Source: Mantamonas sphyraenae STR306 (taxonomy: Eukaryota > Protista > CRuMs). From it: a DNA stretch of 64,000 nt. How positions within the stretch are numbered: the stretch's first letter is position 1; every line of letters starts with the position of its first letter. Shown here one piece after another: positions 34,187-38,263 of the stretch. A program made the translations under genes and the position numbers. Under the pieces are notes generated by a model that saw only the letters and a program-made list of their open reading frames with translations, searched no databases and was not told the origin of the DNA. The stretch lies in NCBI GenBank assembly GCA_026936335.1, contig JAPMXV010000017.1, positions 62,001-126,000 on the forward strand, in the 5' to 3' direction.

Positions 34187-37100
34187 TTAATACGCCTTTG
34201 CCTCTGCAGGCAGCTCCAGCTTGTCCAACTCGGCAAAGAGCAGCTGTGTGGCACGCTGCATCTTGTCGCGGTACTTGTCACTGGCCTCTTCGACCCAGCG
34301 GGTGCACAGGTTGCGGATGTAGCCCCTTCGCATGGCAAAGTGGTTTTTCACCACGTCTTCAAACCCGACAGGCGGACTGCGCAGCTGTCCTAGCATGGCG
34401 TAGCGGATGTTGTTCAGGCGCAGGCCTTCGTTGTATGCAAACGACGCCGCCTTTCCCTCGCTCGTACCGCGCTGTGCGTCGTATGAGGGTTCGTTGAAGT
34501 ACGGTTCTTGCACAAGAATGAGCGCTTGGATAGACACGAGCACCTGGTGGAGCGAAGACACCTCTGGGTTCCACTTGCTTCCCAGATCCTGGCCGCCGTG
34601 CCACGTGCCCAACAGCGACAGACACACCTTGCCGCAGTTGTACAGGTTCGGGTTGAAACGCACTGTACCGTTGCCTGTGGTCTGCATGTTCATCACCATC
34701 GGGTCTTGCGGATACGTGTCCGGGAAGAAGATGTCAAAGACAAATGCGCCGCTGTCGTACGGCGAATCCGCGGGGCCTGTGATCATCGCGCGCATCACAT
34801 CCAGACGATCCTCATCGCAACGCACAAAGATTGACGATTCACGCATGAGGGGCAGGTTCTCCGCCAGCGTACTCAGCTCGTCCACAATGCGCTTCGTTTT
34901 CGTTTGCGTAAATACACTCGTGCTGCTGCTCTGGATGTTCTCTGCGTAGTGGTGCACATAGCCACCCTCGCCGTCCGTCATGTCCACCTCGTCAAACACC
35001 AGTTCGCCCATCACCTCCACATACACGTCGTTCGAAGGATCGCCGTCGTCCTCCGCTGCTTTGCCCTTGCCGCTGCTGCTACCTGCATCCGAGCTCCCCT
35101 CGCTGCCCAGACTGCTCTTGATGTCTGTCAACGAGCTGTTCACGTTGCCACTCATCGACATGGCAATCGCCAGCTGAGCCAGCTCGTCTTCGTCCTCCGA
35201 CTCGTCATCGTCATCATCATCATCGTCATCGCCATCGCTGTCCTCCTTGCCCTCGATGTTCTGATGGCCCTCTCCCTCTTCCGCATCATTGTTCGCCGTG
35301 CTGTTGCTCAACTGCGCCCCTGAAGACGACGAGGACGACGCAGGCGACGGCAGCGAGGCCACAAGTGCGATCTCGTCCACAGAGGCCACAAAGGAGGAGA
35401 ACAGCTCCATGTCAGTTTTGCCCACTGTGATCTGCTGCAACGCACTCTGCATGGCAGCAGGGCTGTAATCAAAGTTGTCTGCGACGTGCTGGCGAAGGTC
35501 CTCACGCACTGCGTCGCCACTCTTCATGATGCTGACAGTGATGCGCACCAGTTGGCACAGAATGGCCACACGATCAAAGCCATACTTGGACGGATCCGAC
35601 ACGGCGTACTGGTCTACTTCAGGCCCTGCCAGCAGTTCTACAAACTGCACCAGCATGGCCGCATACTTGGCCAGAATGTTGCTGTTGCCCTTGCCGAGAC
35701 TGCGGGCAATGGTTTTGTCACCCACCATCAACTCCAACAGGTCCAAGATGGAGATGCTCAGCTTGAGAAAGCCCGTGGCGGTGCGCTCCTGGCCCTTGAA
35801 GTAGGCGATGCGCTCCTCAATGATCATTGGATCCTGTGCGTTCCACTCCTGCGTGTTTGCCATCGCCACCTCCAGGGTTTTGATGTCCACCAACCGGCCC
35901 AGTGAGTCTTCAAACAGGTGGATTTCGTCGTTGAGCATGGTGTCCACAAACTTGGCAAAGTGAAGCGAGGTTGTGTCCAGCGACGCCACAAAGCCCGTCA
36001 TCGGCCACACAGTGACCATCATGTCGGCGATGTCCTTGCGCACGTTGTACTTGTCGAAAATATCCTTGTCGACGTCCAGTCCCTCCACCGTGTCCACATC
36101 GTGGTACAGTTGCATAAACGCAGGCAGAAGCTGCTCACGTGCCAGCTTGCTACGCGTGGCAAAGTTGGCAAACGACACGTTGTGTGGCATGTACGCATAG
36201 TCCTGCGCAATCATCTGCATCTGCCGCTCCTCTGCGCGCATAAACTCGTACATCGCCGTCACCAGCTTCGAGCGCACCAGCGGGCTCTTGACCAGTGCTT
36301 TGTTGCCCATAAAGTACACCATAAAGTCAAAGATGCCCAGAGCATGCACTCTGTCCAGCGCCTCGGGCTTGTTGATTGTCACGTACATCACCAGGTCGAT
36401 CACATCCTTCACCACGCCCTCGGGCAGCGAGGAAAACACGTCCTCCACGGAATCTGCGCCGCCGCCTCCACTGCTGCTGCCGGCGGCTCCTGCCTCTCCT
36501 CCCTTGGCCAGCCAGACCAGCCAGTCGCAGACAAAGACGGCAAAGTTGAGGGCAGAGTCAATGAGATCCGGGTGCATGAGTTGCACCTCGTACTGGTCGA
36601 GTTTGATGACGAGATTGCGCTCAACCGAGCGTGCGCGTTGTGTGTGTTCGTGCTGTTCGCCCACCGTCTGCAGCAACTGCTGCAACTGCGCGTGGTTCTG
36701 GTGGTACACCGTGGTGTAGTAGTGGTATTGGTAGAAGCAGGGCAGTAGGATGACGTGAATCGCACGCAGGGTGAGGAAGAAACACTCGGTGATGAAGGAA
36801 AACTGGCCCTGCAGCACCTGGGGCGTAAAGAACGGAGCACTTTCAAGGTCGTCCGCAAAGCCGTGCAGACTCATGCCTGATGCAGTCACGCCCGTGGACA
36901 AACGTGCGTCGTGCAGCAGGTTGACACGGTAGTTCAGATCGCAATAGTGCACATTGATGGCCTTGCGTTTGTCCTCCCGCAGAAAGGGTTCGCTCAATTG
37001 CAGCAACTGGTACATGAGTGGCAGCAGCGTGCTGTTGCTTCCGCTCACCTGCAGCATGTTGTTGTCAAACGGGTTGCGCGGATTCGCAGCGCGTTGTTCG

Positions 37101-38263
37101 TTCAGCTGCAGCGTGGCACTCACCCATGCCAGAAAGTTTTCGCGGCACTCCTTGCCACACAACTTCTTCATGATGGGCAACAGCGTGTTGTGTACCTGCT
37201 TCATGGCCGAGCGCAGCGACTCTTTGTGCGCCTGGGTCTCGTCGCGGTCCGAGTACGGATAGTTCTCCACCGCAGAGAAGTTGAGCGGTTCCCACAGACC
37301 AAACTGGTTCTGGGGATCCTCAAACACGGAAGCACATGCAAGGATGGGTGACATGCTTGAGGCTGCTTCGAGTTGCCGTCCGTTTGTGCCTGTCGCTGTG
37401 GTGACCTCGTAGCCCAGCATGCTGCTGATGAGGGAGATCCAGTCGGAGCGCACCACCGTACCCAGAAGCTTGAGATGCGGCCCAAACTCGAGCGCAGTCA
37501 GCGGCTTGGCCGAGCGGATCTGCCACAGCCCGTTGGCAAGTTGCCACAGGAACGCCTGGTAGGCACTGGCCATCCCTGTCGTGGCCGAAGACACGCGCGA
37601 CAGATGGTTCAGCAGCGGTGTGGACAGTTTGGGCATTTTGGAAATCAGCAAGGGTGCAAGTGGTGTGCCCTGTGCACCAAAGTACGACGCGTTCTGTTCG
37701 CTGGAAAGCACCGTCTGGAACACGTCTGCGTTGCACGGTGACGACATGGACAGTGGAACGGCCGGTTGTGTGAGTGGCAAGCATGTGTGTGTGCATTACG
37801 CTTGTCGTGATGGGGAGTCCACGTTTGGCCCTGAGGGGCCAAAAGGAAGGACAGGCAGGAGCCGGAAGCGGAATTGCGTGGGCTCCACACGCACACACAC
37901 CCGCACCCACTCACCTTGGATTGCGCGTGCAATACTGTCGCGCACGCTCTCCGTGTCCTTCTCCTCCTGGTTGGGCTCCTTGCGCGCCTTGGGATCCTTC
38001 CTGTTGGGTGGCGTAAAGGTAGGCATGCCTGCCGTGCGCTCGAAACAATCGAGCAGATAAGAGAAGCGGCCCGGCGAGCCACCCTGCTGCTTGGCCACAG
38101 CCTCAGCCACAATCGCGTCACAGTGCTCCACCTTCAACTGCGACTCGCTATCCACCGTTTGCGCCAACTCGTTCAAGTACAGACCCTTGCCGCCCTGCGT
38201 CAGGCACACGCCAAACACAGCGGCCAGGGTTTTGGCAGACGACGACGACGACGACGACGACAT
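34187..38263 (-). CDS. Ufd2/UBE4-type E4 core fused to a UIM-like motif and a BIRC6-like UBC (E2) domain; no U-box
   Basis: YLLDCFER, FSFITECFFLTLRAIH, LPE..KD, LVKSPLVRSKLV, FDKYNVR, FVD.MLND and L.V..PSKYGFD match Ufd2P_core. The C-terminal MITGPADSPYDSGAFVFDIFFP..TTGNGTVRFNPNLYNCGKVCLSLLGTW..SIQALILV.EPYFNEP is a BIRC6-class UBC. Intron 37726..37914. Confidence 0.88.

Follow-up and report, generated by a model that had tools for sequence, protein, structure and literature searches.

A Ufd2-like core fused to a BIRC6-type ubiquitin-conjugating domain in Mantamonas sphyraenae, a divergent member of a widespread and apparently unstudied protein family

In yeast, the core of Ufd2 binds ubiquitin chains and places them for the ubiquitin-charged conjugating enzyme Ubc4 (Ubc4~Ub), which is bound to the U-box of the same protein. 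A different arrangement is found in BIRC6 and UBE2O, where ubiquitin is passed from the catalytic cysteine of the protein's own ubiquitin-conjugating (UBC) domain to clients held by the scaffold, and neither a RING nor a U-box is involved. For the first system, the titles of the PDB entries 9khs and 9kht describe Ufd2/Ubc4-Ub bound to K29-linked di- and tri-ubiquitin. In this work we analyzed a gene of the protist Mantamonas sphyraenae STR306 in which elements of both systems are found together: a Ufd2-type core, characteristic of the chain-elongating factors (E4), is followed by a BIRC6-type ubiquitin-conjugating (E2) domain in a single open reading frame (ORF). The gene was studied in a window of 64,000 nucleotides (assembly GCA_026936335.1, contig JAPMXV010000017.1, positions 62,001 to 126,000 of the forward strand), and positions given below without a contig name are those of the window. 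These analyses show that the gene encodes a divergent member of an old and widespread family that has apparently not been studied.

The gene lies on the minus strand, where a stop-free ORF of 1197 codons occupies 34187..37780, and the following features were assigned to it (residue numbers in the list are those of this ORF):

37915..38263, minus strand: exon 1, 116 codons plus 1 base, with the ATG at 38261-38263; Ufd2-family N-terminal region.
37726..37914, minus strand: intron of 189 nt predicted from the sequence, GTGAGT...CGCAG, phase 1.
34187..37725, minus strand: exon 2, 1178 codons plus the TAA stop at 34187-34189, with core, linker and UBC domain in one frame.
35378..37270, minus strand: Ufd2P_core (PF10408), residues 171-801, an all-helical solenoid.
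35024..35377, minus strand: linker rich in Ser, Asp and Glu in the place of the U-box, residues 802-919 (~118 residues), predicted to be disordered.
35147-35194, minus strand: motif DEDELAQLAIAMSMSG, resembling a ubiquitin-interacting motif (UIM) by pattern match, with a poly-Asp run before it.
34259..34975, minus strand: BIRC6-type UBC domain including its N- and C-terminal extensions, assigned by phmmer, Foldseek and tree.
34487..34882, minus strand: UQ_con (Pfam), residues 967-1098, E 6.6e-21, 74.8 bits.
34610-34654, minus strand: active-site motif NPNLYNCGKVCLSLL, with the catalytic Cys codon at 34622-34624.

A sequence-only reading of this stretch had described a continuous ORF after a single intron, with no mention of the strand, and the ATG at 38263, the 189-nt GT-AG intron, the start of exon 2 at 37725 and the GC content by codon position all agree with that description. 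The donor CAAG|GTGAGT is located at 37914 and the acceptor CGCAG| at 37726 is the first in-frame acceptor past the in-frame TAA (37796-37798), which lies inside the intron and splits the ORF of exon 1 from that of exon 2. The GC content at third codon positions (GC3) is 0.78 in exon 1 and 0.76 in exon 2, where it is even along the whole exon, linker included, and 0.60 in the upstream spacer; in the intron the GC content is flat across codon positions (0.57/0.62/0.63). Exon 1 contains the motifs VFGVCL and YLLDCFER, the latter at 38036-38059, and the two-exon model is supported both by these Ufd2 N-terminal motifs and by the codon-position GC. A BLASTP comparison of exon 1 with the fusion relatives described below gave no significant match; using MAFFT and a motif search, exon 1 aligns with the N-termini of the canonical UBE4 proteins P0121 and P0122 and of the fusion protein P0004 (13-27% identity), with a shared order of motifs consisting of VFGVxL, an acidic or amphipathic stretch, and YLxxCxxR. 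This suggests a kinship of exon 1 to the Ufd2 N-terminus, and the relatives hold ~120-150 N-terminal residues beyond those given by exon 2 alone. The searches and the folding reported here used the exons separately, and the spliced product would have, by arithmetic, ~1295 residues. Judged on its sequence, the gene is real and single and has two exons; its intron and its single transcript are predicted.

The Ufd2P_core profile matches the protein with an E-value of 5.2e-86 and 289.9 bits (cut-off 20.4), and the match extends from position 19 to 627 of the 628 positions of the profile, so the full core that had been claimed for this ORF is present. In the Pfam scan of the ORF only Ufd2P_core and UQ_con were found. 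Along with the complete core, the protein resembles Ufd2, UBE4A and UBE4B in its N-terminal motifs and in its fold, which can be followed over ~830 columns of yeast Ufd2; a Foldseek comparison of the core with the yeast Ufd2 structure 2qiz gave an E-value of 5.6e-18 over 829 columns (TM 0.45/0.55). In contrast to these proteins, it lacks the U-box, and a disordered linker and an E2 domain come after the core. No U-box (PF04564) was detected by Pfam in the protein, and neither a U-box nor any other credible family was found in the 167-residue stretch around the linker, even at E<=10; the segment that follows the core is predicted to be disordered in the AlphaFold2 (AF2) model. A six-frame search for U-boxes in the whole assembly (25.06 Mb, 78 contigs, ~59% GC) detected 10 loci, none of them on the contig that carries this gene (C17). 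Since there is no match in the protein, the linker or the six frames of the contig, the U-box is truly absent and does not lie in a missed exon; a hidden or degenerate U-box was considered and is ruled out by the linker scan, the six-frame search and the predicted disorder. The earlier statement that the U-box had been replaced is therefore upheld, with the UBC domain following core and linker.

The UBC domain belongs to the BIRC6 subtype. When the C-terminal 267 residues were compared with all PDB sequences using phmmer, the best match was the UBC domain of human BIRC6 (3ceg, E 1.9e-74), residues 6-244 being aligned with 51-288 of 3ceg, a span that covers the N- and C-terminal extensions specific to BIRC6. 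The next matches were UBE2O (~1e-39) and UBE2Z (~1e-30), and ordinary E2s appeared only at ~1e-11. The structural comparison gave the same assignment (Foldseek, target TM-score 0.88 over 291 columns). The catalytic cysteine is present in the context NPNLY..GKVCLS, hence the BIRC6-type domain with an intact cysteine had been correctly recognized from the letters, the motif NPNLYNCGKVCLSLL included. The likeness to BIRC6 (also known as BRUCE or Apollon) thus includes the UBC subtype with both extensions, the NPN...GKVCLS site and the C-terminal position of the domain on a large scaffold; the differences are equally clear, given that no BIR domain was found in the Pfam scan of this protein, the giant scaffold is missing and a Ufd2 core stands in its place, and the UBC domains of the fusion proteins form a clade of their own. 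With UBE2O the protein shares a substrate-binding region followed by a C-terminal UBC domain of the same broad class (E 1e-39), but the N-terminal modules of UBE2O are SH3-like, and the genome has its own UBE2O orthologue.

A word-based protein search retrieved at least 34 database proteins that have PF10408 and PF00179 and no U-box. They come from Amoebozoa, Chlorophyta, Cnidaria, Cephalochordata, Mollusca and many environmental contigs; the animal members are found in Branchiostoma (three species or hybrids), Actinia, and the gastropods Littorina, Haliotis, Babylonia, Nucella and Batillaria, the algal ones in Trebouxia and Ostreobium, and the amoebozoan ones in Cavostelium and Pyxidicula. 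Examples are Branchiostoma belcheri LOC109473492 (P0012), Actinia tenebrosa LOC116303263 (P0021), Trebouxia WJX77_011104 (P0011), Ostreobium CAD7700715.1 and Cavostelium EP01114_P010870 (P0001). These proteins are annotated as 'uncharacterized' or carry the automatic name 'ubiquitin-protein ligase'. They have the same domain order as the Mantamonas protein, share its invariant catalytic block and fall with it in the same clades for both domains; in contrast, the Mantamonas protein alone has a linker about three times longer with an acidic UIM-like helix. When this protein is compared with the family, ~28-32% of the core residues and 45-62% of the UBC residues are identical, and the N-terminus is longer by 300-600 residues in the metazoan and algal members. 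The catalytic motif is present in 35 of 35 fusion proteins, with N-P-N-L-Y..G-K-V-C-L-S-L-L-G-T-W invariant in the alignment, and both domains are under purifying conservation across a very wide taxonomic span.

In a tree that took in 124 BIRC6-type UBC domains, those of 33 of the 34 fusion proteins were placed in one clade made up of fusion proteins only (SH-like approximate likelihood ratio test, SH-aLRT, 97), and the placement of P0029, at the base, was unresolved. In the tree of the cores, 28 fusion cores were split from four canonical UBE4 cores, that of the same genome included (SH-aLRT 99), and the Mantamonas core was found in a 10-member subclade with a support of 98. The internal groups are the same in both trees: the Mantamonas protein with those of amoebozoan type, the green-algal proteins, and the cnidarian protein followed by those of amphioxus and molluscs; the closest relatives of the Mantamonas fusion protein are the amoebozoan ones. 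A fusion-only UBC clade together with separated cores and matching groups points to one old fusion, and the pattern fits a single event that would have been followed by vertical inheritance and many losses. These results bear on the possibility that the gene is an artefact, in which a neighbouring E2 gene would have been joined to a truncated UBE4 through misassembly or through a linker that happens to be open. The linker is indeed a low-complexity sequence, but its codon-position GC (0.60/0.39/0.73) is a coding pattern, it is improbable that ~118 codons would stay open by chance in DNA of ~58% GC, and the ORF runs for 1197 codons with no stop. Moreover, the same domain order is found in at least 34 proteins of distant taxa, assembled transcripts included (the Cavostelium and Pyxidicula members are Trinity transcripts, and therefore the fusion is a single mRNA there), and the UBC and core trees are congruent, so that an artefact is hardly credible.

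A full-text search of the literature found no description of a Ufd2-core/UBC fusion; a survey of Biomphalaria reported a ufd-2 with the core only and no U-box, which was put down to annotation. The proteins retrieved by the word-based search did not include any from the usual model organisms. We know of no Ufd2-core/UBC fusion in these organisms. The architecture had been regarded as unfamiliar, and in this respect it is apparently undescribed, although it is not rare, being present in at least 34 proteins across distant taxa. On sequence grounds, the Mantamonas protein is a divergent member of an old, widespread and apparently unstudied family.

The genome of M. sphyraenae also encodes proteins of the classical types. 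A canonical UBE4 was sought elsewhere in the assembly and is present on contig C58, where both Ufd2P_core (E 3e-138) and the U-box (E 1e-21) were detected; the core of the fusion protein falls outside the canonical UBE4 clade, to which this copy belongs. Because the canonical UBE4 has been kept, the fusion adds to the classical E4 and does not replace it. The BIRC6-type UBC is present on three further scaffolds, which are listed here with the UBE2O orthologue:

C52 ~388.9-400.2 kb, plus strand: true BIRC6 with BIR, giant scaffold and UBC.
C18 ~149.3-162.5 kb, minus strand: ZZ and SPRY giant with BIRC6-type UBC, ORF of 4370 aa.
C74 ~60.9-64.95 kb, plus strand: TLDc protein with BIRC6-type UBC, ORF of 1335 aa.
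C3 ~82.4-85.4 kb, minus strand: UBE2O orthologue with SH3-B and SH3-C domains.

The UBC cassette thus looks modular in this organism. Four full-length SCCH domains of ubiquitin-activating enzymes (E1) similar to UBA1 and UBA6 were also detected in the genome, in the following places:

C4:370695-371435: E1 SCCH domain.
C45:260539-261303: E1 SCCH domain.
C34:385226-386011: E1 SCCH domain.
C7:65334-66095: E1 SCCH domain.

Eukaryotes usually have one or two such E1s, and the four found here could work together with the expanded BIRC6-type E2s.

Exon 2 was modelled with AF2 using 34 relatives as the alignment. The model has a mean predicted local distance difference test (pLDDT) score of 80.8 and a predicted TM-score (pTM) of 0.81; core and UBC domain are confident, with values mostly of 85-95 in the core, and the two best folds returned by Foldseek for the model are the BIRC6 UBC domain and yeast Ufd2. 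Between the two domains, residues 794-892 of exon 2 have a pLDDT of ~30, except that the UIM-like motif is predicted to form a short helix (844-856). As separate pieces (100-793 and 893-1178, exon 2 numbering), core and UBC domain were also submitted to a complex prediction, which gave a score of 0.54 vs 0.00 for the best of three controls; the docking mark is passed by 51 of the 78 solved complexes and by 2 of the 108 mismatched pairs, and at values of 0.60 or less by only 5 of the 78 solved complexes and by all four of the mismatches that pass (of 180). At least 81% of the contacts agree between runs, and the pLDDT of the partner is 85 or more. The pTM of the whole chain points the same way as the docking and is not an independent proof of it.

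Taking these results together, we consider it probable, with some reserve, that the protein is a self-contained hybrid E2/E4, in which a BIRC6-type E2, attached covalently, stands in place of the U-box of a scaffold like that of Ufd2/UBE4. For such an enzyme, ubiquitin would be loaded by one of the E1s of the organism onto the cysteine encoded at 34622-34624. The client would be bound by the Ufd2-like helical core, as it is by the core of yeast Ufd2, and would most likely be a ubiquitin chain or a protein that already carries ubiquitin. Ubiquitin would then pass to it directly from the tethered E2~Ub, which could either dock on the core or move about on the disordered linker; as in BIRC6 and UBE2O, neither a U-box nor a separate E2 would be required. 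In this lineage the linker would have lengthened to ~118 residues and acquired an acidic helix resembling a UIM, which may add a ubiquitin contact. In this scheme we infer the charging, the identity of the client, the extension of chains and the role of the UIM-like motif. A broader form of the proposal, which we hold only tentatively, is that the family represents an ancient, self-sufficient enzyme for the extension or branching of chains that would predate the split of Amorphea and green algae, in which the core would present the acceptor chain to the E2 in cis and, in Mantamonas, the UIM-like helix would add a ubiquitin contact. It would have been lost in all standard model organisms, and this loss, if the proposal is true, would explain the lack of study.

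Several observations weigh against the proposal of a self-contained hybrid E2/E4. In the structural alignment the core shares only ~17% identity with yeast Ufd2 (phmmer E 6e-9), and it groups with the other fusion cores in a separate clade; the ligand of the core could therefore be something other than ubiquitin chains. The trees are quick ones, and that of the cores, effectively unrooted and with an assumed root, has only four canonical cores as outgroup; this outgroup is thin because the word search with the canonical UBE4 of the genome gave only three proteins. The complex prediction lends weak support to the docking of the UBC domain on the core, and in Mantamonas the single transcript is argued from the open frame, the codon statistics and the transcripts of relatives. 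The self-contained chain elongation put forward in the sequence-only reading, all of it inferred, is plausible. The UIM-like motif also counts against the proposal, given that the Pfam UIM profile (PF02809) has no match in the linker or in the lone 31-aa segment at E<=10, and that a pattern search found the motif in the linkers of 0 of the 34 relatives.

The acidic linker with a UIM had been part of the sequence-only reading, which expected Pfam to return Ufd2P_core, UIM and UQ_con and no U-box. The core, UQ_con and the absence of the U-box were obtained as expected, but the UIM was not. The motif itself is present at 35147-35194, in a linker that is about three times longer than those of the relatives (~118 vs ~35-42 residues); it fits the UIM pattern, an acidic run followed by x-x-A-hydrophobic-x-x-S, and lies on the lone predicted helix within the disorder, but it fails in the Pfam scan and is not conserved. 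The same scan detects two UIMs in the Trebouxia protein P0011 (aa 4-63; 22.7 bits, cut-off 21). The loose UIM pattern gives about six likely chance matches in ~45,000 aa of relatives, and because of these chance matches the pattern match is not decisive. We lean slightly toward the motif having no real role in ubiquitin binding, and, as far as the comparison with relatives goes, it is a lineage-specific extra that is outside the design of the family. In the Ostreobium protein P0022 an N-terminal UIM (aa ~125-135) was recognized by pattern only, in contrast to that of Trebouxia P0011, which passes Pfam; ubiquitin-binding motifs seem to have been recruited repeatedly, at different positions, in the fusion family.

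The main rival to the self-contained hybrid E2/E4 is a client-directed hybrid of E2 and ubiquitin ligase (E3) like UBE2O or BIRC6, in which the solenoid would have been repurposed for clients that are not ubiquitinated and the product would be mono- or multi-mono-ubiquitin priming. Room for this reading is left by the fusion cores, which are only distantly similar to yeast Ufd2 and form a distinct clade on long branches away from canonical UBE4; it also accords with the canonical UBE4 kept in the genome, which would do the classical E4 work, and with the known BIRC6- and UBE2O-type hybrids, which act directly on clients (PDB titles such as those of UBE2O with NAP1L1 and uL2). In contrast, the conservation of Ufd2P_core from end to end (19-627 of 628) and of the N-terminal motifs suggests that interactions of the Ufd2 type have been retained, and the recurrence of UIMs in the family, at the N-terminus in Trebouxia and as the UIM-like motif here, hints at ubiquitin handling; we regard the client-directed reading as rather unlikely. 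The protein could also be an ordinary E2 that needs an external E3, its core serving as an adaptor to Cdc48/p97, to proteasome shuttle factors or to another ligase. Yeast Ufd2 does bind Cdc48 and the ubiquitin-like domains of Rad23 and Dsk2 (the latter also from the titles of PDB 3m62 and 3m63), but the UBC domain is of the BIRC6/UBE2O/UBE2Z class, whose characterised scaffold-attached members work with no RING or U-box partner, and such an adaptor seems to us improbable. Of these readings, the self-contained hybrid E2/E4 is the one that we favour.

Some other observations were made in the course of this analysis. A convergent ORF of 1300 codons is located on the plus strand at 30265-34167 (TGA), and its stop is 19 nt from that of the fusion gene (34187-34189); with the stops so close, these convergent transcripts must abut or overlap at their 3' ends. 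Among the environmental (ENA) proteins with a BIRC6-type UBC domain, P0069 (827 aa) and P0104 (1968 aa, 61 member sequences) also carry E1 domains, ThiF and FCCH in both and SCCH in P0104; they look like E1-E2 fusions, which may be real genes or joins of gene models. P0072 of Saccostrea cucullata (1784 aa) is annotated with an ORC1/Cdc6-type AAA domain, a BAH domain and a BIRC6-type UBC domain, and could result from the merging of neighbouring genes during gene prediction.

The E4s and the hybrid E2/E3s are usually seen as separate solutions to the building of ubiquitin chains, and the fusion family joins both in one polypeptide. As the Mantamonas gene belongs to a family already visible in the databases, the surprise is moderate; nonetheless, the family provides a natural minimal system, formed by an E1 and one protein, for the question of how a scaffold of the Ufd2 type positions the acceptor ubiquitin, and it lets one ask if a BIRC6-type E2 extends or branches chains with neither a RING nor a U-box. 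The BIRC6-type UBC domain emerges as a portable catalytic cassette that in one genome is attached to Ufd2-core, BIR, ZZ and SPRY, and TLDc scaffolds. Because the family lies outside the usual laboratory models, it is a component of the ubiquitin system that has escaped notice.

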